Origin: Oculina patagonica
Lineage: Eukaryota
Reading direction: 5' to 3'
Assembly: GCF_052425735.1 (NCBI RefSeq)
Contig: NC_135767.1
Span: forward strand, 21,638,001-21,702,000
Length of the DNA stretch: 64,000 nucleotides
The translations under genes were made by a program, and so were the position numbers. Shown piece after piece: positions 862 through 63,777 of the stretch. The notes under the pieces are model-generated. The model was given only the letters and a program-made list of their open reading frames with translations, ran no database searches and was not told the origin of the DNA. The number at the start of each line of letters is the position of its first letter. Position 1 is the stretch's first letter.

Positions 862-2188
862 GTTGCCAAGACGCTCTAGGTATGGAAAGCGGTGCAATTG
901 AGAAGAAGCAACTTATTGCATCCTCGAGCAATTATAGAACAGCTGGTCCCGAGCAGGCCAGATTGAACTTAGAAAGAGACAAGGGGAAGACCGCAGGATC
1001 ATGGAGGGCAGATGACGAAGACTACGATGCATGGTTGCAAGTTGATTTGAACAGCAACTATACTGTAATAACTGGTGTAGCAACACAAGGGAGAAAACAT
1101 CAGACCAAGTGGGTGACAAAATACAAGCTTCAGTACTGGGGACATGATGTGGATGTCCAATACTACAAAGATGAAGGGCAGTCTGGCCCATTCAAGGTAA
1201 ATTGATTGAATTTTGTCATTTTTATATTGATTTTCTTGGTGTAAGCCTAAAGTATTAGTCGTTGTCAACTTTCCTTCGGAAAATTGCCTAAGTCCGCGTT
1301 TGTTTGCGAAGTTGCTAATAAACATGTGATGTACCCTTATGACGTCATGCATGCTGCCATGATTGTTTTCGGCGTGCTCGCGACTGTTGGAGCTAGCTTT
1401 TGATCGAAAAGTAAGAAGCTTAAGCTAAGCTTTTGAAATCATGTCGTAAAATTTACCTTTTTCTCTACCGTCAAGATAAGGCCACCTCATTACTAAGTGT
1501 CAGGCATTATTAACTACAAAACTTGCATTTTCTGGATTAGTTCTCTAGTTTATTGGCTATGTGTATATGGGTAATTTCCGTTAGCTGATGCCTAAAAGGC
1601 CATGTTACAGAAGGCAATTTTCCTTGTAACTTGCAACGCAACGGTGACGATTGAAAAATATTGCAAGTTGCAGAGGAAGTGTCACACGTTCGCAATTTTT
1701 CCACGCAACTTGCAACGAATCAGCTGGAAATCGTCTTGAAATCTCCAACAAGCGAAGAACGCGCTCTAATTGGCTCATTTTAATAAAACTGCATTACAAG
1801 TTGCGCTTGCCAGCGCTTGGCATGTAACACACAGCAACGTTGCGAAAAGTTGAAGATAGTTCTACTATTCTTTCAACCTGCAAGCAACATTTAGTTGCAT
1901 TGCAGGTTGCAAAAGTGGGATGTTACACGTGAAACTGGCAATGCAAAAAAAAATTGCCTTGTGTAACATGGCCTTAAAGCGATACTAAGACTGATACAAA
2001 GAGTATAAGTCTTACAAATCCTTAGCAACGTTCTATTTAACTGATTCAGGAATTTGCTGGAAATACAGACCGGGATACTATTGTTTATCATGAGCTTAAC
2101 CTACCAATCAGGGCACAGTTCATCAAGTTTATTCCAATGGCTTGGGTAGGCAAAATAGCAATGAGACTGGAGCTCTATGGCTGTGAGG
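862..2188 (+). CDS. Gene A discoidin (F5/8 type C) domain, two exons
   Basis: [13 protein letters not shown]...WLQVDL...GVATQGR...WVTKYKLQY / [16 protein letters not shown]...MRLELYGC. Confidence 0.92.
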
Positions 2189-5100
2189 GTATGTTTTTAA
2201 TATTCATTGCATCTCAAAACGTAAAACCACATTGTCTTTTAATGATTGGTCTTATCAATCTGACTTGTAACAAATACATTAAGCCTATTTGCACCGGGAA
2301 GGGGTGGTGAGGAGGGGGCCTTGCCTCCTAATCGCAATCATAGTGGAGAGCAAGACCAATCAAATAACGTCTTTGGAGGCAACCAAAGTTAAGGAGTGCT
2401 CAATTAAACTTATCAGAGAACATTCTTTCTGTTCCAGCAAGGAATTACCAAACTTTTGTAATATTCTGTTTATTCTCGTTTTGTTTTATTTTTTTGTTTT
2501 GTGTTATTTTTTTTAGTTTCTCACTTCCTTTCCATTATGAGTTGACTATGAGTAATTGTTTATAAAGCCTACCTCTAGCTTACCGAGAATGTAGTTCCGA
2601 AGGTGTCCGTAATAGCGAGAGTTGACATTAGATCTATATTCTTAATATCGCTGAATTTAGGCCAATTGTTGTATTACACATAAACATTCCTATAAATATA
2701 TTTAAATATAGTTGCGTTTAAGCCGGAAGGAGGACGTGTGTTACTATACTAAGTAGGGACCGTCGTTACATCGTTTGTGACATTCTCTTATTATCTTAAA
2801 ACTTCAGACGCGTGCCTGTCCAGTCCATGTTTGAATGGTGGTACCTGTATCAGTAACTACACTTCAGGAACTTTTGTATGCATTTGTCCTTCAGATTACT
2901 ATGGTGAAACTTGTGAATTAGGTAAGATAAAAAAGTAAAACCAGTGTTTGGTTGGTAAGCACTCAGAAATAAGCGTTAAAGGGAAGCTTGGAAGAGATGG
3001 TTATGCTCGTTTTCTAAAGAGTAGATAGAATCAGCCTCGTCGACGTACGTTCCCCTACTCGCCGCTAAGTAATTGAATTCTTTATTACACGTTTGACTGC
3101 AAGATTCTTCTGCAGTCCACAGGTTAAGATTTAACCTGTCCAGTCTTATCCAATCCAACCCAATTCAGTCCAGTACAGTTCATCCTAGTGCTATCCTACC
3201 CTATTCTATTCCTTCCGATATCCAATCCAATGCTATCCAATCCAGTAAAATCCATTTTATTCCAGTCCAGTCGAATCCAATCCGAATTAACCGATTCCAG
3301 TGCAATCCAATTGAATCCATTCGATCCAGTGCAGCACGGTGCAGTCCAGCCCATTTAAATCCAACCCCATTTAATCCAATCAAATCCAGTCCAGGACAGT
3401 GCAGTCCAGTCCAATCCATTCCAATTACATCCACTGCAATCCAGTCCACTCCATTCCGGCGCAGTGCAATACAATCCAATTCTACCCAATCCATATCATA
3501 TCGAATCGTATCGTATCGTATCGTTTCGTATCATATCATATCATATACTAAATTAACGAACCTGGCCGGTTTCATTACCTCGACCTCTCGATCCGAACTT
3601 CTGCGTATTATCATTAGCCTTTGGTGCCTACTTGTGTAATCTATTAAAAGCGACTTATTAATCTAAGACGCATGGTTGATTGGATGTGGTGGATTGATAC
3701 TGCAAACTGACATTTATGATTATGAGATTATCGAAAAACTGTGCTTGACTTGTGAAACATGTATGCTTTTATGCAGTTCACTAGATTCCCTGTAACATTT
3801 TAAAATCGCTTAGTTACAATAACAAGTTCCCTAGCTCTTAGTCAAAAGCAAGGCTTCGAAAGTATTTGTTGTTTTAACAGGTAATCAGTGCTTGCTAAGT
3901 CCATGTCTAAATGGAGGTACCTGCTCGTCCTGTAATCACTGGCCGCATTTTGAATGCAGATGCCCTTCTGGATACATTGGCTTCAACTGTGGCACTGAGC
4001 TAGGTAAGAAATTGTCCTTTCTCATAAAAGCTATGACGACAATATTAAATAAGACGATCCAAAAACGATAAGAAAATGATAATAAGAAAAACTGATCCAG
4101 CATATTGGTTGCTGGGCGAACAGAAAATCATCACACACCACTGCGCATACGTATTTACTCAGAATGTTTTTTTTTTTGTTTTTTTTGCCGTGTAAAATGA
4201 TTACGTACATATAATGTAATGTTGTACACGGATTCCACTTCTGACATCAAGTGACGACAGCACTAAACAGCAATCACACAAAGGAAACAAACATACATAC
4301 ATACAGACAGACCGACAAATAAAGAACAACGACAACGACAAAAACAAAAACAGCAAAAAATCAACAACAAAACAAACAAATGCCCTCTGTAGTGGCTTTT
4401 TTAATATTTCTTAATTTAATCCATAAATTATGTGATTGCTGGTACTTGATTACTGGTAACAGCCAGCATCACTAAATTAAAGAAAATGTTTTCTTTGGCA
4501 AGTCCAGAATTTATATAGTTAGTGTCCGAAAGAGGACTTCGCACATTAGTATTATTGAAATAAAACATAAAGCTAAGCAAGAGACAACGGTTTACTAAAA
4601 AAGAAGCTTCTTTCTGCGAGTAAGATTTAATTTTCAGTCTGTTTCCAGCAGCGTAGGACAACGTAAAAATTTATTGGCGTTCTTTTAGTGTCGAAGTCTG
4701 ATAAAAGCTAGCAATGGACAAATTTCGTTTTTTTTCCTAACAGGTGATGCGTGCGCAGCCAATCCTTGTCTGAATGGTGGCACCTGTACAGCGGAGGACA
4801 ATTCGTTAGGTTTTACATGCAGCTGCACAGGATTAATCACTACTTATAACTGCGACACTCAAGGTGATACGTATTGCCATCCCGACAAGATAACTCAATA
4901 CTTAGTGTGTATTTGCATTGGTTATGACCATAACCGACACCTAGCAGGCTCTGCCCGGAGGTCTAAGCCGTTACCCTTTTATATGCCATTTGAGACGGGA
5001 AAGGTTACCCTTTCGTAAACCTTTAATATGAAAATGGTTTCTCTTTCATATACCTAAACTGCAGCTCTTTTCTTAATTTTTCACTTATAAATACCCCAAA

Positions 5101-8100
5101 CATTTTTCAATGAATTGACCGGTTCGGTAAGTCTTGATGAGATATTTTGAAAGGTCCTTTAAAATACTTAAATGACGGTTTTCGCTATCCTTTTATATAC
5201 TACAACTCGTGAAAGCCCAGTGCTTTTACATACCTACAGCCTGAAAAAAGTTGCCCTTTTAGGCAGAGCCTCCCAGCTCTAGGGATTCTCCCTTGAGCGG
5301 GAGGCTGTAAGCTTACACTTACCAACGTTTTTCTTAACAGGTACAGCCAAAACATAACTCTTATGTTGGTTTTGTATCTTTTCTAGACGACAGGATTTGT
5401 TGAGATTGATTTAGCACAACCAAAGGAGAAATGACTTTGTGAGAAAACAAAATCCCCTTCTAAACAAAGCTATGAAAAAGTTGTGTAACAGATACGTTTG
5501 TGATTTTTCACCAGCTGTTGCGTGTTTGCCCAATAATCCTTGCCTAAATGGAGGGACCTGTACGGTAGTTATTGACTGGCCGTTGTTCACATGCAGTTGT
5601 CCCTCTGGATATTTTGGTTATAATTGTGGATTTCCACAAGGTAAGACACGTCGTCACGAGGTAGCCTTTAACTAACCTTTTTGTGTAAATCATCATCGTC
5701 ATCAAAATCATCATCATCATCACAATCGTAATTATCATCATCATCCTCATCATCATCATCATTATCATCATCATCAACATCATCATCATCATCTGTTTCC
5801 TTTTTTAGTATAAAAAAATGTTTCTATTGTCTTGTATTTTTCGTTTTTCTTTTCTCTTGACAATTTATTGAAGGTTAAGCAACATAAATTGCAACACCAA
5901 CAGAAATAAAGTTCAAAAGTTGTTGGAAAATAAATATACAAAATGTTTTTAAATTTCAGATGGCTGCACACAAGTTAACCCGCCCAAATTTCTGGATCAG
6001 TATCTCTTTTTGACAAAGACTTACAAACGCTCAAAGCTAATCAGAAATTGTACTTCTTAACAGGCGACCCGTGTTCAGACGAACCTTGCAAGAATGGTGG
6101 GACATGTACCGTGGCTGATAACTCGGTTGGATCTGAATGTACCGTGGCTAATAACTTGCTTGGATTTGTGTGCAATTGTCCTTCAGAATATATCGGCTTT
6201 GATTGTGGCACTCTGAAAGGTAATATGCACCCTCCTAAAAATGAGACTAAAGTTTTTATGAGTCAACGAGTCATGAGTCATGAGTCAATGAGTCAAATCT
6301 TAAATTAGAGGTATAAATTTGAAAATAGTGCTACCCTTACTAACAAATTAAAGCTAACCGCAAGCAAACCAGAGTGCAACTAACCGCAAGCAAAAAAAAC
6401 TTTCCAATACACCCACTACTCTTCTTGCCACCCACCAGGGGCCAAAAAAAGGCTTCATTAAGGGTGAGACACTCAGACTTCTAAGAACCAACTCCACTGA
6501 TAAATTATTCAACGATAATTAGAATAAATTCAAAACACGCCTCCATGCGAGAGGCTACCCTAAAGCATTCGTTGAAAGAATAACAAGCGAAGTCAAATTC
6601 AGTGAAAGAAAGTTGGCTCTAAAACAGAAAGAGAAACAACAGAAAAAAATTCTACCATTTACAACAAAATTCCACCCGGCTCTGCCAAACATAAAAAACA
6701 TCCTTATGAACAAGTGGCATTTAATTCAAAACCAACCAAAATTGAGAGAAATATTCAAGGAACCTCCCTTAATCTCATACAAAAGGGGCAGATCCCTAAA
6801 AGATATGCTCGTTAAAGCTAAACTTTGATACAGTAACGTTTCCCTCATCACGGAAATATGAGTCGTGTTTGGCCTGTCTACACCTTTTTAGTAAAAATTT
6901 CACGACAAAAATAAAAAATCACAACAATAAATAAAAAATTACCAAAATATTATTTTAGCAGATTATGAGGACTTATTCTATAGGCCAATAGCTGGATTTT
7001 AAAGCATGCTATATATTTTAATCTTCTTGAACATATTTTATCTTAGCTTGCTATACCGATCGAAATTCAGTTTAAAAAGATTTGATGTATACTGTACGCT
7101 GTTTTCTCATTTAAATGAAAATTTCAAATCATGTTGATAACTAACTGAATTAGCCTTGCAGAATTTCGCCAAACGGATCAATAAACTGTGTGTGAGTCAC
7201 ATGACATTCTAATGCCAGCGAACTGTGCACTTGCTCCTTAATTTACCGAGGCATCAAATCGCGCGCTGAATTTGCCGCAAAATCTTAAGTTCTAGTAGCT
7301 CACTATGTTATTAATATTAACATTATTTTGCTCTAAAAAGGACCAATTTTGTTTAAATATACATGTATTTCTCAACAGCGTGTTCCCCCAATCCTTGTGC
7401 AAATAATGGCAGCTGTACAGGGGCGACCAACACACAAGGGTTTACATGCAACTGTTCTTCAGAGTACATTGGTGATACATGCGAAAATAAAATTGGTAAG
7501 ACAAGCTTTTTCAGCTCCTTCCAGTTTTCTTGGTTTTGCTGACATTGAACACATTTCAAAGAAGTTTTTTTTTTTTTTTAAAAAAAAAGACAGGTTCAAA
7601 TACAGCAAATTATAATTAGGTTAACGTGGCACAAATAAGTGTGCCTAATTCGTGCATTTCTTATGACATTGGAACAAGGGAACTACTACAAAGACATCAG
7701 ATGCTCAAAACACGCCTCTTTGATCCACGTTCCATTAATTTCTTTCTATATATTCTCTTTATTAAATTTAATTTTTAAGTTTAATTTTATTTCAGTTCAT
7801 GGCAACTGGAGTAGCTGGTCTCCATGGCCTAACTGTAACAAGCCGTGTAATGGCGGAATAAGGACCAGAAAGCGCATGTGTGATAACCCTGAACCAGCAT
7901 TTGGCGGGAACAACTGCACTGGTCCGGCAAATGAGACTGAGCCCTGTAATTTGGACAGTTGCCCACGTAAATATACTTTCCTCTTGTTTTATTTTGCACT
8001 GTCACTGCCATTAGTGCTCTAGTTTATATTTAAAACAAAATTATTAATCTTCTTTTGCAATAAAAAAATGTAAAGAAAATTGAACCATCTCATACAAAAT

Positions 8101-11100
8101 AATAAACATTCGTTTGTTAGCCTGCCCCCCCCCCCCCCCCACCCCTATTGATCCCCACACGTCTTACATTGTAGTAATGAAATTTACAGTGTGTGCAAAG
8201 GAACGAGCATACGTTCATTATATTGCACTCGTGTGCAGGTTATAAAGTCGTATAATCATAGGCGTACGGGCACCTTCGGACCTGGGGGGGCGGAGACCTA
8301 ATTGCCCGAAAAAAAAAATGACATGCATTGAAAGCCGAATAAAAAGGCATTTAAAATGGACAATGAAACGTGCATTGAAATAGTTGTGTACAAACCTCAA
8401 CTTGCCTGCTTGCTTTAAGGAAATAAACGATAGTTTTTTTCATTAATTTCGTGGTGTTGCCCGAAGATGTCAATGCACCGTATCTTTTTTTTCTTCGGAA
8501 ATAGGTTATTTATCCACTCCTGAGTTCAGCAAAAATTAACGTATTTTCGGGCAGCCAATTTACATTCCCTCACTTGAAAGATATGTAAAAGCGTGTCAGG
8601 TAAATGGGTTAAAACATTTCGTTGAAAGTTTTGAGCTAGCCCTTACGACTTAACTTAATAACATTTGAGTCAAAGCACTAGCTTCATCACATCTGTAACA
8701 ACTTTTGTTTCAAGGTCTTAGGCTGCGCGCAAACGATCGAGCTATGGAGAATCCTAACTTCTGGTCACCTTCGCCAATTTCCTTCTTACTTCAAGTGATT
8801 GTAACTAAATCAAACTGTGGGGTAACACAAAATTTGCCAGAAAAATCGAACGGGATTATAGCAATTTGCGAGAGGAAACGAAAACATACATGAGAAATCA
8901 GTTAGACTTTTGAACCACAAAGTTATATTTCCAATACTTTTTTCTGTTGATGTAATTCGTTTTGAACGTCATGTTGAGATTTGTCGGCTTATTTTCTATT
9001 TTTTTTCTCTAGGCTTGTTGCCCGAATTCCAAGCATTTTGCCCGAAACATTTCATCCCTGGGGGGGCTGCAGCCCCCCCCCCCCAGACCCTCCCCCCCCG
9101 TTTCGTACGCCTATGCGTATAATACTCAAATGACGTCACACATTTAAAAAGGTTTGCCATATTTAGTTTGCCATCAAGAAATCTCCAAAATTGATTTCAA
9201 CAGATCGAGAAAAACATAAAGATAGATAAGCTGTGTAAAGGAAATTCCTCATAAAAAGAAAAATATCACTCAAACAGAAATTTGATTTATTTTAAGCGGA
9301 AGAGATAAACTATAAGGTCAAGCTGACAAATGACGCCTGGAATGATAATCTAGCCAACCCAGCAAGTCAACCTTATATTGAGCTCGAGGACAAAATCAAA
9401 CAAGATGTAAGTTGAGCGATCTTGATTCACTTTTCTTTTCCTGCTCACTTCACTTCACTTCACTTCACTTCACTACACTTCACTTAATTTCGGACCACTG
9501 CACTTTTAACTGCACTTATCTTATTTTACTGCACTACACAGCATTTTACTGTACCCCACTACACCTTACTACACGCCACTGTTATTCACTGCATTGTGCT
9601 ACACTGAGCTGAAATATAACTTAACACTAATAAAACTAATAATTCAAGTGATTTTACAGGAATGTTTGAATGATCTAGGCATATGAACGATAAATATTGT
9701 CTATTCCAATTATAGGTGAAGGATTTCTACACGAAGAGGAATTATAATGTTATTGTGAAGGTCTTAGAATTCAGGTAATCCTGCTGAAAAATCCATTTTT
9801 CGAATAAAATTTTCTCACTGATGAAAGGTCTTTAGTTAATTAACTTTGTAAAAAAAAAAACAAATTTTAAGGTAGAGGTTTCGTAACTATATTTCCTTCC
9901 TATTCACTCCTTCCTTTCTTTTGTGATGGAAATTGTTCTTTTATTTTCATCCATTAATTTTTTTGAGGAAAATTTTAGCGGATTTCCCAGCGGCCCAAAC
10001 GCAGAGCAGAGCCCCATACCCATAGAAAATTAACAGACCCATGCTTTTGGTTTTTCATGGTCATCATGGCTAGCGGCATGGTTCGCGGGCGCGTGCGACG
10101 ACGTCGCCCCAACATGGCGCCCCCATACTCCAGAAATAGGTTTAAGGTTATGGTTAACGTCAGCTTACATCTTTAATATTGGACATCCATGTCATGGTCA
10201 ACTGACAGCTGTCAAACCAAGGTATCTGCTGACCAATATCACATGACCATATGGCGAGCTCACATATAGAACTCATCGAGGTCGCATGTTTTTTTGAAGT
10301 TTACCGCTGACTTAGTAATGGTTTACATTGGATCGCGGGCTCAAGTGCTAGATTTTTCCTGTTATCGGTCAGTAAATTCGGATTTACGAAAGGGGCGAAG
10401 TAAATAATCGGAGAGCTCCGCTTTTAGGCTTGGCTAAATCTATTGTGAGATATTTCCGACTTATCATAAAAGTCTCCAAAGATATTTTCCCTGATTCTTT
10501 CCATTGTTTATAGGGAAGGGAGCATCATTTCCAGTTTCAACGTGACCTATTCTTCAGTAGACTCGTTTCAAATTGTCTCACTTCAGGAAGAAATTGCTGG
10601 TGGATCCTTAGTTGATACACCAGCTGAATTACTCGACATCACAACTACTAACGGTACGTGAGAAATGATTTATAACAACCTCAAGGGATTCATATAAAGG
10701 GAAACCCCTAAAAGGCACCATAATGTCAAATTCTTTTTCGTCCTAAGAAGTACCAATTCTTTGTAACAAACCGCCTCTGTTGATACACCATTTGAGAACA
10801 GTACGTAAGTAAAGATTTATAACAACTCCCAGGGATTTCATATAAAAGGAACCTCTAAATGGTTTTAGAATATCAAATTCATTTTCACCCCTAAGCAGTA
10901 CCATTTTCTTACAAGTCGCTCCTTTTAATACAACCTTAACATCACAACTTTTAAAGGCATACGAGTAAAGATTTATAATAACCCTCTGGGGTTTCAATTA
11001 AAAAAGAACCCTAAAAGATACCGGGAGTTCGAATTCCTTTTCACCCCCAAAAGTTGCCAAATCTTTCTGACGATTCGTTTCTGTTCATGCACCAGTTAAA

Positions 11101-20463: not shown

Positions 20464-20716
20464 CGCTTAGTTCAAGTTTAACCCAGCGTCAAACAAATTT
20501 GTAACAAAAAGAAAGGGTCGCGTGGAAACTGATCGATGTTCTTCATGCGGTCCTTACTATTGGAAGTGCAGTTTATAAGTATTTCGAACAGATGTCGTGG
20601 ACTGCGCTTTGTGATAGTCCTTTCATTTTATTCAGTACAAACTGTCGGGAAATTATGCACCATTAGCTTAGCGGCGCCTTGTATATGGACACATAATCAC
20701 TTAAATTTTAAGTATA

Positions 20717-20892
20717 CAGTCAACTTCCTCTATAACGGACATCTTCGGGACCACATATTGGTGTCCGTAAAAGAGGATGTCCGCAACAGCGAGAATTATT
20801 CTAAGTAATTTGTATTTCCCGGGATTTCATTTCCTGTCAGTAATAACGGTGTGACCGTTTTAGCGAGGTGTCCGCAAGGCAAGAGTTGACTG
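20717..20892. mobile_element. Tc1/mariner-like MITE downstream of the gene A stop (probable 3' UTR)
   Basis: TA-CAGTCAACT...AGTTGACTG termini with internal GTGTCCG repeats. Confidence 0.6.
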
Positions 20893-20965
20893 TCTGTATT
20901 TGTGTTCTTGTTGGTCACAAGTTTAATATTTTAAGGAATTATTACATCCACGGTTATAACACTAG

Positions 20966-22093: not shown

Positions 22094-22124
<31 letters not shown>

Positions 22125-22460: not shown

Positions 22461-22491
<31 letters not shown>

Positions 22492-52900: not shown

Positions 52901-55900
52901 TCTCGACTCCTCCTTATCCACTTTCTATTTCTTTATGTCTCCTCTTTATTCTTCTTTTTTTTTGTTACTTATTGTTTTTATATTCTACTATGTTTCTTAA
53001 TTTCAGTTCATGGCAACTGGAGTAGCTGGTCTCCATGGCCTAACTGTAACAAGCCGTGTAATGGTGGAGTCAAAATAAGAAAGCGGCTGTGTGATAACCC
53101 TGAACCAGCTTTTGGCGGGAAAAACTGCACCGGTCCGGCGAATGAAACTGAGCCCTGTAATTTGAACAGTTGCCCACGTAAATAAACCTTCTTATCGTTT
53201 TATTTTGCACAGTCGCTACCATAAGTGTAAAAGTTCAAATGACAATCTCGATCTCATTTTGCAAAAAGAAAATAGGAAACGGGAAACAATTTGTAACGCA
53301 TGAAAGTACTGCTTAATAGCAAATTATTATAACCTTATTGTACAGCATAACACCCATCTTGCGTAGGCCTGTCCATCAACCTTCCCCAACCACCCCCCCC
53401 CCCCCCCACCATACTACCACCACAACCAAATAATTTTATACCAAAAAAAAACATATCACTCTAAAACAGATAATTTGATTCATTTTCAGCTGAAGAGATA
53501 AATTACAAGGTCAAGCTGACAAATGACGTCTGGAATGATAATCTAGCCAACCCAGCAAGTCAACCTTATATTGAGCTTCAGGAAAAAATCAAGCAAGATG
53601 TAAATATTGGTTTAGCTGTTTTCACTGCTTATTTTAGCCATCTTGATCTATTTTCCACTTTTAGCTCACTTCACCTCGGATCACTGCACGATGCTGCACT
53701 TACTGCACTACACTGCATTTTACGGTACGTTTCTGTATTGACTGCAATGAGCAGGTACATAGCCGGAACCACACTGTTATTTACCACACAGAATTGCATT
53801 GTACCGCACTTAATCACTGCACTGAACTACATTGGGCTACACTGAAAAGCTAGCCGGGGTGACATGGGCTGGGCTAAAATGCCTGAACCTCACTGTATTT
53901 GCACTGTGGTGTAGTGCACTTCAGTGTGCTACACCAGAATATAAATAGGAAACGTCTGTATCAAATGTAACTATTAAATAGATTTAGCAAGCCTAAAAGC
54001 GTAGCTCCACGGCTATTTACTTTGCCCTTTATCCAAAGCTGAATCTACTGACCATAGACAGAAAAAAATACGACTTGAGCCCGTGATCTAATGAAAAACC
54101 ATTAACTTGTCAGGTCAACTTCAAGAAAACACGCGAGCTCGATGAGTTCCACACTCGAGCCTGCTATATGGTCATGTGATACTGGTCAGCGGATACCTCG
54201 TTTTGACAGCTGTTAATTGGTCTAATATTAAAGATGTTAGCTGACGTTAACCTGTTTCTGAAGTATGGCCGCCATGTTTGGGCGACGTACGTACGTCGTA
54301 GAGCTCACGCGCCCGCGAACTGTGCCGCTAGCCATGATAACCATGTAAAATCAAATGCATGGTTCTCCTATTTCTGTAGATTTTGTATTGCTATGGGACT
54401 CCGCTTTGGGGCCCTTCGGGCTCCTGGGAGCTCCGCTTTAAACTAATTAGTCTTAACTTCAAGCGATGTTTCAATCAGGAACATTTTTATAAATCACGGA
54501 AAAGTACTAGAAACGATGGTTTATTTCCAATTGTAGGTGAAGGGTTTCTACACCAAAAGAGATTTCAATGTTGTGGTAAAGGTCTTGGGATTCAGGTAAA
54601 TCCGTTTTAATAACTATTAAAATAAATAACTACTCTATAATGTACAATAATAAATAACATTTCGTCGAATAACATTTTTACACTGATGAAAGTTATTTTA
54701 GTCCTTCCAAAAATTAAGTTAGAGCTTTGCTAAATCAGAGTAAACTTAACATTCACTCTTTCATTCATTCATTCATTCATTCATTCATTCATTCATTCAT
54801 TCATTCGTTCAGTTCTTTTGGAAGGTAAGAAGGTCAGGAAGTAAGTAATGTTTCTTACTCCCAAAACTGGCTGCACTTGGTCTTCTCTGCAAAAATCGAT
54901 GTACATGAAAGGAGAATTTAAAACATGAGGGAAATTTAAAAAGGAACGGAATAGTTAAATCATAAGGGAATTTAAAATGAAACGTAGAAGTTAAAACAAG
55001 AGGGAATTCAAAATAAAATAGAATAGTTAAAACATCGCGAAACTCAAAATGAAACGGAATAAGTAGTTAAAACATGAGGGAACTCAAAATGAAACGGAGA
55101 AGTGAAAACATGAGAGAACTCAAACTTCAACGGTGAAGTGAAAACATGAGGGCACTCAGAACTAAACAGAAAAGTAAAAACATGAGGGAACTGAAAAACA
55201 AATGGAGAAGTTACAACTTGAGGGAACTCAAAATTCAACGGAGAAGTGAATACATTAGAGAACTCAAAATTAAATGGAGAAGTGAAAACATTAGGGAACT
55301 TAAAACCAAACGAAAAAGTGAAACAGGAGGGAACTCAAAATCAAACGGAGAAGTGAAACATGAGAGAAATCAAATTCAAACATAGGCATTAAAAGATGAG
55401 GGAAATTCAAAATCAAACGGAGAAGTTAAAAGATGATCTAAATTCAAAATCAAACAGAGAAGTTAAAAGATGAGGGAACTCAAAATCAAACGGAGAAGTG
55501 AAAACATGAGGGACGTTAAAATCCAACTGAAAAGTAAAAAATGGGGGAACTTAATTTCAAACCGAGAAGTGAAAACAAGAGGGAACCCAAAATTAACAGC
55601 TGTTTCTTCCTTTTTGGCAGAACCTTTTAAGATATTTACACGTATTATAAACATCCGCAAGGATCTAATTATTCTCTGAATCTCGTTCCTGTTTGTAGGG
55701 AAGGAAGCGTCATTTCCAGTTTCAATGTCACCTATCCTTCAGTAGATTCGTTACAAATTGTCTCCCTTCAAGAAGAACTGGCTGGTGGCACATTAGTTAA
55801 TACACCAGCTAAATTACTCAACATTACAACTACTAACGGTATGTGAGTAAAGATTTTATGTCAAGACGATGAAAACACTTATTACAGTATCGTAAATGGT

Positions 55901-58900
55901 TTGAACCCAGGAGTATCAGTAGGTCTTATAGTGTGACCGTCCGGGTGTGAGTAGTTCTGAGAAGAACTGTTGTTGGTGACTGACGTTCAGTTCGACAACC
56001 TGAGTGGAAGTCATCTTCAGTTCATCTCAGAGCTACTCTTACCCGGACGATCACACTATACGACCTACTTAGTACAGTGTTAAGGTTAAGCTCACCCTAT
56101 TTAGATTTGCATTTTAGAAGACATGTGTAATCAAATTTAGTTATATAACTGAGGAAAAGGGACACGTCGATTGTGACGAAAGCTCGTAAAAATAGACCTA
56201 ATGTGCTTTTGCATTGGTTTCTTCCCAGTACCAAACGAAGCTCCAGTTATTCTGGAAGCAGAGAGCACCACTTCAACGTCTATTGATCTTAAGTGGTCGG
56301 AAGTTAATGATTCCATGCCAATTCTTGGTTATGTAATAATTTACAAGGAAATCAACAAAATTTTCCAAGCAGACATCATGAAATCAGTGGAGCCATTACC
56401 TCGTGAAGCGGTGTTAGAAGATTTGAAAAAGTTTACAAATTACACCATACGTGTGTACGCCTTTACTGCTAACGGAAATGGAGTACCGAGCGAGGCAGCC
56501 TCTTTAAGAACCCAGGAAGACGGTAGGTTTATTACTCGTAGCTCCAGTATGGGAGAGAACATTAAAATGTAACTGCACGACCTAAACTGTCAAGATGGTT
56601 CATAATTAAACCAGCCAATCAATCTAATTTCTTTATTGCCAGTCAGGTTTTTCAGCTGTTTGACCTGTTACAGTTTTTATAGGTTTTGTTCAACCATATG
56701 GTCAGGTGATAAGCATTTTATAAACCAAGCTTGCTCCGGACCATACGCGGGGAATATCGTTCTTAGGTCGTTTCTGTTCGGACTTCACCGAGCTTGATCC
56801 GTGCAGTCAAGATCCCCGACTGAAACTCTTCCAGGGCGATCCCCTTCTTTGTTAAATAAATATCTAGATCGATTAGAAAGAGGTAACTTAACGTTACAGT
56901 TACCTTAGTTAACAACGCAACAAACAAGGCCAAGAACAGTAGATTACTTAGTTTGTAACAATCCTGAAATATTCAGGATTTGCTTTGGCTTTGCTTAACT
57001 ATTATCTGCATGTTATTGGTCAAGACAAAAATTGCACCATTAACAAAACCAGTCATAGGAAAATTTAAAACTAATCACGCTTTGTTTAAGTGTGTTTTCT
57101 AACGTTCGAAATCGTTTTGGCTTGCTGTGTTGATTACGTTAGTTGTGATTGTCATCGGGACTGCCTCGTTTTGGTTTCTTTTCAAAATAACGTTTTCTGT
57201 TACTGCTTTATATTATCTACTTCATAAGTTTAATTTATTGCTCAGTAAGTATTGAAATATGAGTTCTCTGTCGCCATCAGTGCCCAGTCAACCGCCACCA
57301 AACAGCGTTATTAAATCTACAAGCACCAGTACAATCGACGTTTCATGGGAGCCAATCAGCCAAGCTTTCGTGCATGGGATACTATTGGGATACGAGGTAA
57401 GGTACGCAAAGGATGACGGGTCGTCGCCGTTGACTTGGGAAACAGTGACACTTGATGCAAACACGCTTGGAGTGGTTTTAAGTGATCTGGAATATTTTAC
57501 GCGGTACAAGGTGGTGGTTTGTGCTAGGACTTCCAAAGGATGTGGCGAGGAATATTCCGACATCGCTTACACATACGGTGATGGTGAGTAGAATGTTATA
57601 GAAGGAAATTACTGGGAGAGCCCTCTGTTGTATAAGCTGCTGTGTTTAACCCTAACCCCAGCCGTTTGTTGGCCAAAATTGTGAAACCAACCATTTGCCA
57701 CCAATCTCGGCACGATGATAGAATTTTGCCGTTGCAATCGAATACCGTTTAAGTTTCCCAAATTCATCGTGATTTTCTCACGTTAACAGCAATTCGAATT
57801 GCAACCCTTACCTTAGCCGTTTTTTATTGCCAAAATTTCAAAATCAACCGTTTGCCACAAAACTCGGCACGATGATAGAGGTTTTACATTGCAATCGAAT
57901 GCTGTGCAAATTTTTCAAATTCATCGAGATCTTCACGTTAAGCGCAGTTCGAAGTTGCTAACCCTTACCTTACTAGTATACTATATATACTGACTCACTA
58001 CTAAATCTGCTTGTTTACTAATGCAAATGGGACAATCTGATTGGTTGATCTACTCGTACTCTATTAGATTAATTAAACTGATGAGGCCAAAGGCCGAACC
58101 AACAATCACCTCATAAAAATTGAGAGCAAATAATCTTGTTTTAGTAGAATTCATACTGAAGATTGTCCATTTAAATGATTTCCAATTATTTATGCATTAT
58201 AAAGTAAAATTGACTTCATACATACCGAGCTCGTGCGTACAGGTATACTGATAGTAAACGAGTAGCTTAACCAATCAGATAGTCGCATTTGCATTAGTAT
58301 ACTAGTAGATTTCTACTTATTGTTAATCTTTGTTAACTTGTACTATCTTTTCTCTTTTAAGTACCCAGCATGCCTCCTCAAACTGTGACAGCCCATAATC
58401 TTACATCCGCAGTGGGCATAAACGTTACTTGGACACCAGTCCCTATGGGTCACGTGAACGGCCTTCTAATGGGTTATTCCATAAAATATCGAAGAATTCA
58501 AACAGCTGAGAGGGAGGTGTTTTACACAGAGGAGTATACAGTGACTGTAAAATCAACCGAACTCTTGGTTGAGCTTCCAGTTCAAACGTACTCGATTTAC
58601 GAGATTCGAGTGGCGGCTTTTACACAAAAGGGCATGGGACCGTACAGTGAATTCGTCCATGGTGGTAGGTATTTTTTGAAATAATCAAAAATTCGTCATG
58701 TTCATCTAAACAAAGGAAATCGTTACATTGATGGTGGTTGTAATATGTAGATATTATTGGCATAGATGTTATCGATTATCTTTGTTTACTTCTTGGTATA
58801 AGTCCAACTTCAATGGGGAGATATTTGTATTACTCGAGACAATTCTTCATTCCATCTTTAAACACCTCAAATTTTGTCAAAAATTAACTTGCTGTGTGTC

Positions 58901-60172
58901 CTGTATACAACTTTCTTCTCTATGATTAGAAATATGATGAAGCACTGTATTTCGTGTTTAAATACTGATTCAAATCTGGATTAAGTTACCATATAAACCA
59001 TGAAGATGAATTGTTCAACAATGACACAAGCATGGGACAAAGAAAAAATCTGTGTCCCTGACGGGAATCAAACCCATGGCCTCCCAGATACCGGTTGGGC
59101 GCTCTAACTAACTGAGCTATGAGAGACACGTGGTGAGTTGGGCCATTTACTAGGTTGATATATGACACGCGTCCTGCATACTGCTAGGATCAGCAATGTC
59201 GAAATCATCAAGTGTGTAGTAAATAATAAAGATGGTAAATTTAAAGCTCGGTGGTAAATATTCAAGATGAATTGTTCAACAAAGACACGAGCAAAGAAAA
59301 AATCCTAGTCCCCGACAAGAATCAAACCATGTAACAAACCATGTTACCGTGGCAAACGATTAGTTAATTGATCAATCATGCGATGCAATATGACACACCA
59401 TAATCTTTGTGTGTTTTTTGCAGAAACCTGCCGTTGTCCCGAAATCCTCTACACAAACTATTGGTCGAATTCTCCATATCTTAAGGTGAACGACGAGGAC
59501 AATACACTAGAAGGAGTACTTAGCAACATTGTCACTGACATGGTGCATTATGCCTGTGGGATATGTCCCGCACACGGTGATACCTTCATTGACGTAGCTA
59601 CAAATGGCAAGGAAAAGCCGTCCGCCAAGAAAAGCGTCTTAGAAGTGCTTCGCGACATGGATGACGTTCCACAGATAAGCTTTCCTATCTATGGCAACCA
59701 ATACATCGAAAGATACATGGGGGAATATGCCTACATAAACCTTGTGGAGTCCCCTGGGGTGGCTTTTATTGCCGCTAAGAGGCCCCCAGGAAAAGCCGCT
59801 GACAACATGATGAGCGCACTATTTGACTGTCTTCCCTTGCTGATGTTGTCATTGTGCATGGCTTTTATATCAGGATTTATAATTTGGATATTGGTAAGTT
59901 GCTACTTTTTGAGTTACTCTTGAGTTCCATCCTGACATGAAATCATTTGTAGCTTAAGTGAAATTCAGTTTTCACTAAAGTGGAGAAAAGAACACCTAGT
60001 CTTTGACGGCAGTCAAATGACTCACTCTTGTTACTTGTTTAATTTCTGAATGCGTTTGGTAATGTCATGAACATTGATTAAGCTCATTTCTTAGTTTTCC
60101 GTCCTTTTAATAATAATAAAAATAATATATAATAATAATGAGGATGACGACGACGACGTTGACGACGACGAC

Positions 60173-60217: not shown

Positions 60218-63200
60218 CGTTATTTGAAACAGTTATTTTAATTTCAGTTTTTTGCATGGCTAAAATGATGTCTAGATGTCACTAAGTATAGCACTATGTA
60301 CCGATGCAACAATTCATGCGAAACTTTGATAGTTAATACCCGGACAACATTTTCATACGTATTCATGATGCTATTATTTCTTCCAGGACTGCAAGTCTAA
60401 CCCTGATGAATTTCCAGGCGGCTTTAGGAAAGGTGTTGGTGAAGGATTTTGGTGGTCGTTCGTTTCCATGACAACTGTCGGGTAAGCCGGCATTAGGAAA
60501 ATCTTTTTTTTTTTTTTTCATGTTTGGATTATTAAATTAGCGTGCGAATGTTTTTTTTCAGTGGGTGCAAATATAAAGTTCGTATGACCCATTGACCTAT
60601 TCTTCCACCCGCCTGTTTCAATTGAGTCATAAAATTACGACGGCAAAAAATGAAGTAAAGTAAAACGACGTAAAGACTAAGATTAAAACAACACGCACAG
60701 TCCGTTGTCACACTCTTAGGTAAAAGGGAAATCTCAAATTTTTGTTTATTAGTGTGCACGTGTGTGTGTTTCGCTGTTGCTGTTGCTTTTGTTTTTGTTT
60801 TAATTTCTTTTTTTTGTTTGTTTTACAGATACGGAGACCGGTCCCCCCGCTCTATCCCTGCCCGTATTTTTGCTATTATGTGGACACTGACTGGTCTCGT
60901 CATCATTGGCATTCTGATTGGTGCAATTGCCTCGTCACTCACATCTGTTACTGTAGATCATTCCATCATTCTTTATGGGTCAAAGGTGTGTTCAAAATTA
61001 CAAATATGCTTGTATAATTAAACGTAAGTACAAGTATTACAACGAAAAGTAATTTTAGTGACACTTAGTGTAACATTATGCATGTCCAAACTTGCTAGTT
61101 TGTGTCATGCTACCCTTGGAAGGATTTAGTAAATTAATTAGACTGTTCATTTTGCTGCTTTTAAGAGAAAATTACTCGGAGAGGTTAAAAAAAAAGTGAT
61201 AGTTTTTTGGAATCCGTCGCTAGAAGTATACCAAAATAAAAACAAACATCGATGACAAAACTTCGATAACTGGGCTTTTATTTAAACATATTTAGTTGTA
61301 AAAGGGTGTCGTCGTACCTCACTATATGAAACGAGTCTGAGTATAGACGGTAGCAATGGGAGACAGATGTGAACAAGCTTCAGCTGGGGAAGACAGATAA
61401 CTATAGAAATGAAGAAGGGGAAGGAAGAATAATTATCCTTGCAAGTCTTTAACAGACTAGACAATCATTGTTCTGTAGGTTTACGGTATATTTGGTCCTT
61501 TTTTACCAAACTTTTAGTGATAATTTTACCATACCTTGATAATATTGTATCACTGACAGTTTTCACGATGAAGTATTCTGCATTCTAAAATCTAGATTGG
61601 AGCCATTCATAACTCCACGGAACATCAAATCGCTACTCGTAAGAACGCAAGGGTAAACGAAGGTACGAAATATGAGTTCCAGTGTTTATGTAGTTACGTT
61701 TTTAAATAGGAACTCTTAATTAAGTATAAAATGGATTGATAAATGTATTACTGATGGTTTTTGAAGCGAAATGGGATTAACAGACCAAAGCAACAAAATG
61801 CGAACTTCGGATTAAGCTCAGTCTTGGTGTACGTCTATTAATTTTCGACACAAATTTTTGACGAAACCTTCATCTTGCCCAATGTATTTCGAAACAACCA
61901 ATTCTCCCAGTTCCATGCCTATTTCTTCATTTCTTTCTTCATCAACATCTCGCAATCATAAATTTAAAAAAGTTATCAAAATTCGTAGGACCTTCAGCTC
62001 TAGTGCAGAACTTAAGACGGAATGAAACCCCAGTGATAGGTTGTGTGTGTGTGTGTGATTATTATGGATGGTATCTGTTTTTTGTCATTGTATTGTATTG
62101 ACATTGACATCTCATTCATATTTTTAAAGACTGGTTACATAAAACTTTTAGTTCTAACTAATATTTTTTTTTAAGAATAATGTGAAAACGCATTAAAACA
62201 TTTAGTTTCTTGCACGCCCCATGATCAGATTTCGTTGACCTAACGGTGCATAATTATTTGCCTACAGAACGAAAGTACAGAAGCTTCGAAGAGCTTCGAA
62301 CAGCACTAGAAGATGGAGAAATCGATGGAGCCCTGCTAGACACGTACGTTGCTGCAGAACATAAGGAAGAGATTTTTAGCGATAAGATATATGTGAAAGA
62401 GATCCTGGACCGGCCATTTGGTTATGGGGTGGTGCTTTCAGGTGCGGCAAGGAATGTGGAACAAAGATGTCGGGATTACATTGACATGCAAATACGTGAT
62501 ATATTCGATATCATCCAGAATACTACAAAGACGCTTGACGTAAGTTTCGTGGTAAAATTTTTAATTTTCAATTAAATGTTACGCGGTAATAAATGGGCCA
62601 AGGGAGGTTCAGGGTGGCTGGAACGACCAGAAAGGCTGTATCACATCATTTTGCTGCTTTGAAACCCAAATATAACTTTGTCACAGAGTGTGAAGCCATG
62701 AATGCGTTTGCCCTAGGGCCCTGAGTAGGACCCGGAGCCCCGCAGCCCAACGTTTTCGGTCATGGAGCCCTGGAGCGCTTAATACCTTAAATGACACTGA
62801 TATAATTAACTTCAATGTGTCTCGCAATGTATTGAGATGACGGTAGCAAAGTTTCACTTTTTCCCTTGTCTTTCCACAGCCGGCTGACCCAGATGAGGAA
62901 GTGGAAGAAAGTACAGGCTTGTTTGATGGTTCTTCTGATATGTTTTTTACTGCCATGGCGTCTCTGCTTGGTATCTTGGGAGTGGCTGTAATTGCGGGAC
63001 TCGTTTATCAGTATTTGATATTTGTTCCCGGAAGGAAAAGAGGTAAAGGAAATCCTTTCATATCACAGTTGTGGGGAACAGTTGCGTAGACAATAACAGG
63101 GATTGGCGCAGACAACACGACTTTTTTGTGTAAATTAAACAAAAAACTTGCTTAAAAGTAAGCAGCTTGCTACCCCCATTCCATCCCCCCCTTTCCCAGT

Positions 63201-63777
63201 TCCATCCCTCGCTTGTGTTGACTATTGGCCAAGCTTACAGCTAATCAATTCTATTATATTTATTTTAGTGGAAAGCTTAAAAGCCTCTGCATCGCAACTC
63301 GCTTACAAAGAGGCCCTCGTTGCCGAAATGAGAGAATTCGTAGACTCATTCCACTCTGAGATGTGCACCAAGATCACTGCAATAATGAGAAAGTACGAAC
63401 GAGCAATAACAGAGATCAACACAACAGAAAAACAACGTGCAAAGCAACGCAAGGAATTTGCAGGCCTTTACAAAGAGGCCTCGGTAAAAAGCTGTAGGAT
63501 TACAAATCCAGTATATTCAGGATTGGCAGAGGAACAGTCGTATGATTTGAACAAGAAACGTATTTGGTCTGAATCGACGAAATACAATCTTGACCAGCAT
63601 GAACCATGGCATTCTCTTAATTCTGCAGCTTTGACCAGTGCACGAAAGTCTTCAAGTACAGAAAGCGCTTGTCCTTCACTGCTATCCTACGATGGACTAC
63701 CAGTCACCAGGCCAAAAGAGGAGAGACGTGAAAGACGGGAAACGAATTTGCATAAGAGTAAAGTAAAAAGATTCTGA
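25559..63777 (+). CDS. Gene B: D8C - 3xEGF - F5/8C - 2xEGF - F5/8C - 8xEGF - TSP1 - SEA - 3xFN3 - iGluR-like S1/M1/pore(TTVGYGD)/M3/S2/M4 - tail; paralogue of gene A; start/signal exon not identified
   Basis: Exons: 25559-25954; 33121-33261, 33668-33799, 34544-34669; 37215-37549, 38811-38952; 40677-40802, 41441-41551; 42897-43231, 43759-43897; 44727-44840, 45597-45719, 46956-47078, 48551-48673, 50211-50336, 50772-50894, 51373-51495, 52209-52331; 53007-53177; 53490-53599, 54537-54595, 55699-55838; 56229-56522, 57281-57583, 58362-58664; 59424-59893; 60387-60481; 60829-60985; 61596-61662; 62268-62539; 62880-63042; 63269-63777. All GT-AG, in frame, about 2,020 aa. A few acceptors have alternative in-frame AGs 6-12 nt away. 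Joining the D8C exon to the rest is inferred from phase and strand. Confidence 0.87.
27940..28370. mobile_element. MITE with CCCGG(G)-polyG termini nested in transposase exon
   Basis: 8-bp TSD GGATCCAG (27932-27939, 28371-28378); removing it restores the reading frame. Confidence 0.85.
29634..29915 (+). mobile_element. tRNA-derived SINE (CORE-like) nested in the Sola3-like element
   Basis: A box TGGCCTAATGG, B box GGATTCGAGCC, body CTCTCCACCCAGGTGTATAAATGGG, tail ACTTTACCTT. Confidence 0.8.
32696..33107. mobile_element. MITE with AGGGACTGTGTCAC termini and TTAA flanks (Kolobok-like); other copies at about 36843-37177 (inverted) and 42422-42809
   Basis: TIRs and shared internal sequence among three copies. 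Confidence 0.75.
34085..34355 (-). mobile_element. RTE-clade LINE 3' fragment
   Basis: Degenerate minus-strand [13 protein letters not shown]...[11 protein letters not shown]...CWWENVTAL; homologous to 40945-41245. Confidence 0.7.
35559..36839. mobile_element. DNA-element shell (TIR GCAT.AGTCAATTGA) enclosing a Penelope-like RT remnant
   Basis: Inverted ends GCATAAGTCAATTGA / TCAATTGACTGATGC. Confidence 0.55.
35845..36440 (-). mobile_element. Penelope-like RT remnant
   Basis: WERFIDD (YIDD-like), [37 protein letters not shown]. Confidence 0.8.
37615..38051. mobile_element. Harbinger-like MITE with GATCG-rich subterminal repeats
   Basis: TIR GGTTCTCATA.../...TATGAGAACC. Confidence 0.6.
40863..41245 (-). 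mobile_element. RTE-clade LINE 3' end with (GAT)n tail
   Basis: Minus [26 protein letters not shown]...; followed on the minus strand by the (ATG)n microsatellite 40863-40940. Confidence 0.75.
41635..41757. repeat. Short hairpin/MITE with about 37-bp inverted arms
   Basis: TAGTTTCCATTGGAAACAACTCGTGCTATTGACGTCA...TGACGTCAATAGCACGAGATGTTTCCAATGGAAACTA. Confidence 0.85.
42276..42318 (+). ncRNA. Minimal type I hammerhead ribozyme motif (Penelope-type)
   Basis: Helix I ACUACA/UGUAGU, core CUGAAGA, helix II GACCG-UUA-CGGUC, GAAA, palindromic GGCC helix III, UA cleavage site. Confidence 0.65.
45939..46490. mobile_element. piggyBac-like MITE
   Basis: TTAA-CCCTATTCAG(G)ACCGGG...CCCGGTCTGAATAGGG-TTAG. 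Confidence 0.8.
47535..48506. mobile_element. Hairpin-ended non-autonomous repeat
   Basis: Palindrome TGTTGTGGATTCAC...GTGAATCCACAACA near one end, AGCCAATCAG motif at the other, internal inverted repeat 48226-48270/48375-48450; same layout as 49003-49965. Confidence 0.55.
49003..49965. mobile_element. Hairpin-ended non-autonomous repeat with about 150-bp palindrome
   Basis: GTGCAATTTGGGATAAATAAGCACTCGTAAATTTTTCAAAG...CTTTGAAAAATTTACGAGTGCTTATTTATCCCAAATTGCAC; ends AGCCAATCAGA...TTTTTTCATGTAT. Confidence 0.65.
51047..51290 (+). mobile_element. tRNA-derived CORE-like SINE
   Basis: GGTTCTAACCC B-box-like motif, TTGGGCAAGACACTTTACTCTCACAG CORE-like block, same 3' body as 29634-29915. Confidence 0.75.
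52350..52675. mobile_element. MITE with CCCGGG-polyG termini
   Basis: 8-bp TSD TTTTTCAC (52342-52349, 52676-52683); absent from the equivalent intron of gene A. Confidence 0.85.
53978..54440 (+). mobile_element. Interspersed repeat, same family as 9985-10443
   Basis: TAGATTTAGCAAGCCTAAAAGCGTAGCTCC...GGAGCTCCGCTTT. Confidence 0.65.
54760..54811. repeat. (TTCA)n microsatellite
   Basis: Direct reading. Confidence 0.95.
54905..55595. repeat. 36-bp minisatellite (about 18 units)
   Basis: Consensus AAAACATGAGGGAACTCAAAATCAAACGGAGAAGTG. Confidence 0.85.
55918..56069 (-). mobile_element. Short Penelope-type non-autonomous element with inverted ends and a degenerate hammerhead
   Basis: Inverted ends AGTAGGTC.TATAGTGTGA.CGTCCGGGT; minus strand CTGAAGATGAC...GTCGAA core. 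Confidence 0.6.
57660..57972. repeat. About 155-bp two-copy tandem repeat
   Basis: TTTGCCAC.AA.CTCGGCACGATGATAGA...TTGCAATCGAAT...AACCCTTACCTTA x2. Confidence 0.75.
57973..58306. mobile_element. Small inverted-repeat element
   Basis: TACTAGTATACTA ends; TAATGCAAATG.GAC.ATCTGATTGGTT inverted at 58268-58297. Confidence 0.6.
58990..59330 (-). mobile_element. tRNA-like-sequence-containing repeat, partial tandem (about 1.3 units)
   Basis: Minus strand TAGCTCAGTTAGTTAGAGCG (A box) and GGTTTGATTCC (B box); AAGATGAATTGTTCAACA recurs about 260 nt apart. Confidence 0.7.
59424..63042 (+). CDS. Gene B channel core exons S1-M1-P(TTVGYGD)-M3-S2-M4
   Basis: [14 protein letters not shown] (60387-60481) spliced to [18 protein letters not shown] (60829-); exon lengths identical to gene A (470/95/157/67/272/163). 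Confidence 0.88.
60110..60216. repeat. (AAT)n/(GAC)n/(GAT)n compound microsatellite
   Basis: Direct reading. Confidence 0.95.

Follow-up and report, generated by a model that had tools for sequence, protein, structure and literature searches.

The 64-kb window analyzed in this study, a stretch of Oculina patagonica DNA (contig NC_135767.1, positions 21,638,001 to 21,702,000), contains two tandem paralogues on the plus strand, genes A and B, in which exons for a large adhesion ectodomain and exons for a channel module are joined into a single reading frame. The module comprises a predicted extracellular clamshell of two lobes (S1 and S2), a pore with the K+-type filter TTVGYGD between the transmembrane segments M1 and M3, a further segment, M4, and a tail. 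It is GluR0-like rather than close to canonical animal ionotropic glutamate receptors (iGluRs). Both genes belong to a new, unnamed family, of which public gene models exist under wrong names, and this family can be placed at the GluR0 grade of the iGluR superfamily, taken in its broad sense.

Gene structure and transcripts

All coordinates are positions in the window, which has about 39% G+C and no N. The two genes are collinear, their exons are joined through GT..AG introns, and the domain order is the same in both: discoidin, EGF, TSP1, SEA, three fibronectin type III (FN3) domains, S1-M1, pore, M3, S2, M4 and tail.

Gene A
Window start to 20463, +: gene A (exon chain and RNA joints)
About 851/871-1196 and 2050-2188, +: discoidin (F5/8 type C), two exons (Pfam F5_F8_type_C 9e-14, 2e-5; acceptor context; exon chain)
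2754-7523, +: six EGF-like exons, cores near 2815-2920, 3900-4000, 4760-4860, 5520-5640, 6060-6220 and 7390-7500, borders approximate (Pfam EGF, translation, in-frame chain)
7812-7966, +: TSP1 repeat, WSPWPNC at 7816-7836 (Pfam TSP_1 1.5e-15)
9297-9406 and 10473-10653, +: SEA-like domain, two exons (Pfam SEA 22.2 bits on a single exon, threshold 26.4)
11417-11710, 13014-13316 and 13891-14193, +: three FN3 exons (Pfam fn3 5e-14, 1e-11, 2e-9)
14910-15379, +: S1 lobe, opening with ETCRCP and containing four family-invariant Cys, and M1 at 15317-15379 (splice sites, family alignments)
15870-15964, +: pore-helix exon, ending TTVG (RNA joint 15379>15870)
16406-16562, +: exon with YGD and M3, ending IGAIASSLT (Pfam Ion_trans_2 25 bits)
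17212-17278 and 17804-18075, +: S2 lobe, two exons (RNA joints 16562>17212, 17278>17804)
18738-18900, +: M4 exon, transmembrane segment at 18798-18884 (exact RNA contig over 18738-18900)
20048-20463, +: cytoplasmic tail exon, stop included (translation)

Gene B
At least 42886-63777, perhaps from 25559, +: gene B (exon chain and RNA joints)
42886-43231 and 43759-43897, +: discoidin (blastn of A against B, Pfam, phase-1 chain)
44727-52331, +: eight EGF exons (Pfam, chain)
53007-53177, +: TSP1 (Pfam, chain)
53490-53609 and 55662-55838, +: SEA, REGSVISSF at 55697-55723 (chain, collinear with gene A)
56229-56522, 57281-57583 and 58362-58664, +: three FN3 exons (chain; RNA loose end before 58361)
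59424-59893, +: S1-M1 (RNA joints, translation)
60387-60481, +: pore exon (RNA joint 59893>60387)
60829-60985, +: M3 exon (RNA joint 60985>61596 on its 3' side)
61596-61662 and 62268-62539, +: S2, two exons (RNA joints)
62880-63042, +: M4, hydrophobic helix at 62940-63026 (RNA joints)
63269-63777, +: tail, stop included (RNA joint 63042>63269)

The expression data consist of Logan contigs of runs labelled 'RNA?'. Contigs of run X1, placed on gene B at a likeness of at least 95%, revealed GT..AG joints at 58664>59424 (FN3 to S1), 59893>60387, 60985>61596, 61662>62268, 62539>62880 and 63042>63269. X1 covered only exons of this gene, the depth in introns being zero except for a repeat at about 58825-59421. 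One contig of 2150 nt spanned the second S2 exon, M4 and the tail and continued beyond 63780, and the loose end before 58361 represents the end of the second (preceding) FN3 exon. For gene A, error-free contigs were found over 15245-15378, joined to the pore exon at 15870, and over 18738-18900, together with the joints 16562>17212 and 17278>17804. The joint between pore and M3 exons is absent among the RNA joints because adjoining repeats were skipped in read placement; it is supported by the reading frame, by its identical position in both copies and by homologous gene models. An X1 contig of depth 55.8 which carries the FN3-S1 joint differed from gene A (14975-15177) at 17 of 203 positions and from gene B (59489-59691) at three of 203. 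Besides A and B, a third very close copy or allele is expressed, and it follows from the mismatch comparison that the FN3-S1 contigs placed on gene A derive from gene B and from this third copy or allele.

The original prediction, made from the letters of the window, had stated that ectodomain and channel exons form one transcript. This was borne out, as spliced RNA joins the last FN3 exon to S1 and runs on to the tail. The FN3-S1 junctions it proposed, 14193/14910 and 58664/59424, were exact, the latter being demonstrated by an RNA joint; separate genes for the two parts, which it had named as the contrary outcome, were looked for at this junction and RNA contigs were found to cross it. Its list of ectodomain modules held for the most part. 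Pfam recovered F5/8-C, EGF, TSP1, three fn3 domains and D8C, but SEA remained below the threshold on a single exon and the link of the D8C exon to gene B is unproven.

When spliced at the GT..AG sites, both genes could be translated without an internal stop, starting with the last FN3 exon and ending at the stop codons 20461-20463 (A) and 63775-63777 (B); the channel modules have lengths of 546 and 577 amino acids, respectively. The pore-helix frame ending TTVG closes at 15965 (A) and 60482 (B), with exon ends at 15964 and 60481, and the frame of YGDRSP opens at 16407 and 60830, with exon starts at 16406 and 60829. The filter is interrupted between TTVG and YGD by a phase-2 intron in both genes, the Gly codon being split into GG and A. 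IGAIASSLT, which ends M3, and a further motif of 21 residues are each present twice in the window, in agreement with the positions given in the original prediction. In a global alignment of 583 columns, the two modules share 456 identical positions. From the third FN3 domain to M4, the nonsynonymous (dN) and synonymous (dS) divergence between A and B amounts to 0.045 and 0.342, and dN/dS is 0.14 from S1 to M4. The intron between the two S2 exons, the one pair compared, can no longer be aligned. Low dN relative to dS combined with a diverged intron indicates that both copies are under purifying selection.

For the ectodomains of both genes, dynamic programming yielded stop-free chains through GT/AG sites, and blastn of A against B revealed that they are collinear; gene B contains two EGF exons more than gene A. 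Since the first exon of gene A in the window opens with a phase-1 acceptor, the gene must start upstream of it. The SEA region of gene A aligns collinearly with that of Stylophora XP_022801143 and contains a G/S motif in REGSIISSF (10512-10538). Both genes share this kind of motif (REGS[IV]ISSF), and homologues reached 18-27 bits with Pfam SEA compared to a threshold of 26.4. In MUC1-type SEA domains, a motif of this kind (G/SVVV type) is autoproteolytically cleaved.

The channel module, its family and its relatives

Searches of the PDB with a family profile returned K+ channels first, namely LmK (4e-14), followed by Kv4, Kv7, Kv1, KvAP, KcsA (range 4e-14 to 1e-10) and MlotiK, with matches that begin at M1 or at the pore helix and extend over the inner helix (M3). 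Of 24 family modules aligned, 22 retain the filter T[TS][VL]G[YF]G[DE], and the same proportion holds for the WW pore helix with the GYGDRxP motif; degraded filters were found in P0080 (GSQGFGD) and P0054 (deletion). At the end of M3, the family consensus reads GxxTSSLT and there is no SYTANLAAF. Pfam Ion_trans_2 scored 25.0 bits on the M3 exon of the window alone (threshold 22.5) and 28-57 bits in full homologues. Lig_chan reached 21 bits on this exon and 20-34 bits in homologues compared to a threshold of 30.8, which a few members pass. SBP_bac_3 was not detected in the cnidarian proteins, and ANF_receptor was never found by Pfam, the ectodomains giving discoidin, EGF, TSP1, SEA, FN3, CUB, Ig, LamG, MAM and other modules.

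In S1, four Cys and two Pro are invariant across the family, which fits a disulfide-bonded extracellular lobe. S2 contains an 'LxD' motif whose Asp is invariant and aligns with the D of GluR0 'MFD'. The clamshell is strongly conserved, including NSxEY and YGVVLSG motifs. The best PDB matches of the S2 profile were the GluR0 cores of Slr1257 (8.6e-4) and of the Nostoc GluR0 homologue (2.6e-3), followed by amino-acid-binding proteins. For S1, single-exon searches gave nothing in Pfam or PDB, and no significant match was obtained with the family profile against PDB or by hhalign against S1 of the bacterial GluR0-type protein described below. Thus, the homology of S1 is argued from structure only.

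AlphaFold2 models were available for two homologues, a Nematostella member and the closest full-length coral homologue, which are 38% and 61% identical to the proteins of the window; both are monomers. Their mean predicted local distance difference test scores were 85.5 and 79.1, with values above 90 in the folded parts. Both models revealed an alpha/beta clamshell, M1, a pore helix, M3, a return to the clamshell and then M4 and the tail as a single uninterrupted helix some 95 residues long. Foldseek yielded at least 500 PDB matches at E<=0.001, and the 50 listed were all iGluR chains of ligand-binding and transmembrane domain (LBD-TMD), with E values of about 1e-13 over about 450-480 columns; in Swiss-Prot, NMDA, delta, GLR and IR25a receptors were matched. 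Whole-model TM-scores were below 0.5, which is attributed to flexible domain orientation and to the long C-terminal helix. VIA-align ranked two GluR0 cores first, 2pyy and 1ii5 (Z 20.8/20.6 and 20.3/20.1; root-mean-square deviation 2.5-2.8 Å; 202-210 of 217-221 residues). Their alignment takes in both S1 and S2 (residues 10-355 of the models, approximately), and the exons of the window fall into the same columns. GluA2 and GluN1 gave a Z of about 18.9 over 345-350 residues, iGluR chains being aligned through M4 up to model residues of about 405-411. The order M1, pore loop, M3 was predicted and aligned with the iGluR transmembrane domain. S1 and S2 are therefore predicted with confidence to form a bilobed clamshell of the type II periplasmic binding protein (PBP-II) fold with an inserted pore. 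Because the extracellular ectodomain and S1 abut M1, the pore loop would enter from the cytoplasm, as in glutamate receptors. For the same reason, and since the models fold S1 and S2 as a single domain, we rejected the reading as a K+ channel of ordinary orientation in which S1 and S2 would be large loops. In the ESM Atlas, the query sits among cnidarian clusters; the structural neighbours of one such cluster, not of the query itself, include bacterial proteins with SBP_bac_3, Ion_trans_2 and Lig_chan.

The tail (20048-20463 and 63269-63777) contains a family-wide helical motif, EL...V.EF...L...H..E, at alignment columns of about 500-540. It is a candidate coiled coil that may serve assembly.

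The S1-M1 exon matched 396 clusters among 1.84 billion representatives. For 173 clusters, the E value was 1e-10 or lower, and many of the 396 are exon-sized fragments. The whole module (about 450-490 amino acids) is 28-38% identical in at least 30 long gene models (E 1e-58 to 1e-98), in all of which it is located at the C-terminal end; identity to coral homologues is 61-68%, reaching 75% over S1 alone with a Desmophyllum fragment. Members were found in Nematostella vectensis (at least 15 loci), Stylophora, Porites, Acropora, Montipora, Oculina, Desmophyllum, Hydra, Hydractinia, Clytia and Rhopilema, thus covering Anthozoa, Hydrozoa and Scyphozoa. Their ectodomains range from a single FN3 up to 3600 amino acids of pentraxin/LamG, fibrinogen, TLDc, discoidin, MAM, SEA and FN3, or consist of CUB and Ig. 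In most long models analyzed, FN3 adjoins S1, except for the CUB and Ig subgroup, and some members have a very short ectodomain (one FN3, or a protein of 469 amino acids without a Pfam ectodomain match). Automated names given to these proteins are 'contactin-3-like', 'sidekick-1', 'PTPRQ', 'Cubilin' and 'serine-rich adhesin'. In the literature searched, which left out most subscription journals, no paper on the family was found, and in the searched passages of a survey of voltage-gated-like channels covering 623 species, there is no mention of it.

Outside Cnidaria, a protein of the flatworm Macrostomum lignano (UniRef; P0167 and P0205) has a family-like S1 end, M1, pore and M3 (40% identity, hhalign 99.9%), with the stretch PLxxSP...WP...NPxEFPxxFxxGxWEGxWWAFITMTTVGYGDRSPKT. 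Its gene model, which includes a fused SGF29 Tudor fragment, has a chimeric appearance, and an S2 could not be aligned. The family, or a sister of it, may thus exist beyond Cnidaria.

The closest non-family protein found is of the bacterial GluR0 type, with 352 amino acids (P0191, Logan contigs L001-L003) with SBP_bac_3, Lig_chan and Ion_trans_2, encoded on compact prokaryote-like contigs with same-strand gene arrays. It matches the family with an E value of 2.7e-28 (hhalign 99.7%), is 35% identical from M1 to the start of S2, and shares with the cnidarian proteins GYGDRSPKTVGGR, GYGDRSPKT and a similar M3 ending ...ASALT. GluR0 (Synechocystis Slr1257) and its prokaryotic kin, which are K+-selective glutamate receptors, resemble the family in having a binding-protein clamshell split by a two-helix K+-channel pore with TxVGYG. 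By contrast, GluR0 is intronless and prokaryotic and lacks M4, an N-terminal ectodomain and a cytoplasmic tail; its minimal architecture (S1, M1, P, M3 and S2 only) is exceeded in the cnidarian proteins by M4, a tail and an ectodomain of 1000-4000 amino acids. Moreover, the cnidarian S1 is Cys-rich and cannot be aligned to that of GluR0 by sequence.

With the animal and plant iGluRs (AMPA, kainate, NMDA, delta, epsilon, IR25a, GLR), the family shares the LBD-TMD-M4 fold and order, and an M4 follows S2 in both genes. What separates these receptors from the family is their Q/R/N-type pore, the SYTANLAAF gate and the amino-terminal domain (ATD) resembling leucine/isoleucine/valine-binding protein (LIVBP), the latter two being absent from the window genes. 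Membership in the canonical animal iGluR clade is ruled out by the missing SYTANLAAF and ATD and by the K+-type pore. AvGluR1 of the rotifer Adineta vaga has a K+ signature filter and is placed by a review between GluR0 and animal iGluRs as an intermediate; as described there, it differs from the family by an ordinary eukaryotic iGluR architecture (PMC12332018). It presumably has an ATD in place of adhesion modules. K+ channels (KcsA, LmK, KvAP, Kv1/4/7) have pore helix, filter and inner helix in common with the family, which is distinguished by its probably opposite membrane orientation, an extracellular clamshell that would drive the gate and the extra M4. Contactin, sidekick, PTPRQ and cubilin contain FN3, Ig or CUB modules as well but no ion-channel module, and the automated names, reflecting only the ectodomain, are misleading.

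Several further statements of the original prediction can be judged from these data. The order S1-M1-P-M3-S2-M4 with a PBP-II fold agrees with the models of the two homologues and with their GluR0 and iGluR matches, and the K+-type filter was found intact as TTVGYGD in both genes and in 22 of the 24 modules. That adhesion modules replace a LIVBP-like ATD is in line with the lack of ANF_receptor in Pfam searches, and M3 does end in IGAIASSLT without SYTANLAAF. As presumed, automated gene models exist and no characterised protein of this architecture was found. Of the Pfam families it proposed for the channel part, Ion_trans_2 exceeded its threshold and Lig_chan was borderline, but SBP_bac_3 was not detected. 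The suggested AlphaFold comparison favoured GluR0 cores, with GluA2 also aligned, for monomers of homologues in place of the tetramer.

Possible mode of action and significance

From the similarities described above, it is probable that the proteins are GluR0-type receptor-channels, in which the clamshell gates a K+-selective pore and the ectodomain has mainly a placing or anchoring role. Four subunits would form the pore, whose preference for K+ is suggested by the TVGYGD filter and the WW pore helix. Closure of the clamshell on a small extracellular ligand would pull M3 open, as in GluR0 and iGluRs, and opening would hyperpolarise or shunt the cell. Tetramer formation, the inverted pore and clamshell-driven opening are all expected by analogy with these receptors. 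The variable ectodomain may be a stand-in for the iGluR amino-terminal domain; it would mainly place or anchor the channel at contacts with matrix, cells or particles and may modulate gating.

There are points that weigh against this interpretation. Selectivity, gating and tetramer formation are argued from homology, the structures were predicted for monomers of homologues (38% and 61% identical) and not for the spliced proteins of the window, and S1 has no detectable sequence relative. In the family alignment, no Arg is conserved at the position where iGluRs and GluR0 hold the ligand carboxylate, so the ligand may not be an amino acid, or the clamshell may bind no small ligand at all. In a pore of the iGluR type, selectivity for K+ is not assured by a K+ signature alone. 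As to the 5' ends, that of gene A lies upstream of the window, and a signal-peptide exon for gene B was looked for but not detected.

The missing Arg is also what might be expected if a diffusible ligand were dispensable and the K+ channel were gated by adhesion or force. Pull or binding on the tethered ectodomain, possibly after autoproteolysis of SEA, would then be transmitted via the FN3 stalk to the clamshell or to the M3 linkers. Such a mechanism would suit an ectodomain made of adhesion and matrix modules, with FN3 beside S1 in most long models, the SEA-like domain with its G/S motif in both genes, and the contrast between widely varying ectodomains and a constant channel module, as expected of an ectodomain sensor. 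On the other hand, the strong conservation of the clamshell, with its invariant Asp and the motifs NSxEY and YGVVLSG, points to selection on a binding pocket, the ectodomain is minimal in some members (one FN3, or the 469-amino-acid protein), and Pfam SEA stayed below threshold on the window exon. We consider this mechanism unlikely, and the coupling of contact to hyperpolarisation is a conjecture. Delta receptors act as synaptic organisers, and the huge, varied ectodomains, the long conserved helical tail and the few degraded filters (P0080, P0054) could likewise belong to adhesion or organiser proteins whose channel conducts little or nothing; alternatively, the pore might be a non-selective cation channel despite its K+ signature. 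This is distinctly unlikely, as filter, WW pore helix and GYGDRxP persist in 22 of 24 modules across anciently diverged classes, dN/dS between the copies is 0.14 over S1 to M4, and the pore profile scores as a true K+ channel. The suspicion that an adhesion gene and a separate small channel gene are merely adjacent is highly improbable. Spliced RNA contigs connect the last FN3 exon with S1, the arrangement is repeated in both copies and in independent gene models of many species, and S1 has neither a start codon nor a signal peptide of its own. Two separate genes are ruled out by the RNA joints at FN3-S1, even though no single long read spans a whole gene.

According to the textbook view, glutamate receptors arose when the pore of a K+ channel and a bacterial binding protein became fused. 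As links between K+ channels and iGluRs that carry the K+ signature, a 2025 review names only GluR0 from bacteria and AvGluR1 from one rotifer (PMC12332018). To these can be added a large, expressed cnidarian family under purifying selection, which combines a K+ pore, a GluR0-like clamshell and M4 with adhesion modules instead of an ATD. [quoted passage not shown] If the channel is K+-selective, cnidarians would possess an inhibitory K+ conductance gated by ligand or contact, for which animals offer no known counterpart; roles in cnidocyte control, mechanosensation or the recognition of symbionts or prey are speculative. It is conceivable, though rather doubtful, that a macromolecular or mechanical event at the ectodomain directly gates the K+ pore through a clamshell which needs no free amino acid, and that the family is a surviving animal branch of the GluR0 grade which has M4 but never had an ATD. 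Were such a branch confirmed, it would be a living intermediate on the path by which a K+ channel and a binding protein were assembled into glutamate receptors. Which was acquired first, M4 or the N-terminal domain, has become a question that can be approached.

Upstream exons and repeats

Gene B may extend further in the 5' direction, as the following phase-compatible exons precede its discoidin domain.

25559-25954, +: D8C exon (Pfam D8C_UMOD 5e-8, match 25471-25962)
33121-34669, +: three EGF exons (Pfam EGF, phase-compatible chain)
37215-37549 and 38811-38952, +: discoidin (Pfam F5_F8_type_C, chain)
40644-41551, +: two EGF exons (Pfam EGF, chain)

Over gene B and this upstream region, the Pfam matches comprise two F5/8 type C domains, EGF and TSP_1. 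Between 25559 and 58664, almost all modules (D8C, the EGFs, TSP1 and the FN3s) are encoded by one symmetrical phase-1 exon each, with good splice sites, and the discoidin domains are split 1-0/0-1, which is the classic exon-shuffling layout. As all these exons share phase 1, phase compatibility is no proof that 25559-41551 belongs to gene B, and no RNA contig joins the D8C, EGF and discoidin exons of this region to it. The D8C 'cap' is therefore a possible part of gene B. Crude scans of 20470-25558 for a first exon with a signal peptide gave nothing convincing.

Between the stop codon of gene A and the D8C exon, a tandem duplication of 222 bp (22501-22902, 1.8 copies, 91% matches) was found, and related repeats resembling open reading frames (ORFs) occur from about 22005 on. 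An open frame of 181 amino acids (30259-30801), located between the D8C exon and the first EGF exons, is unrelated to the adhesion and channel exons and may be transposon-derived. The intron splitting the SEA domain of gene B contains a 36-bp tandem repeat (54911-55593, about 19 copies, 75% matches), which translates into repeated ORFs that are non-exonic. Interspersed repeats are present in introns of gene B (58825-59421) and gene A (13300-13700), and their depth was very high in every RNA run placed on them; at 59024-59222, it reached about 15,000 at most in X1-X4, and at 13300-13697 it exceeded 1000 in X1. Some loose ends look tRNA-like (GGTTCGATTCCCG), but ARAGORN predicted no tRNA gene anywhere in the window, the strongly transcribed repeat of the intron included. 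The transcribed element is probably similar to a short interspersed nuclear element.

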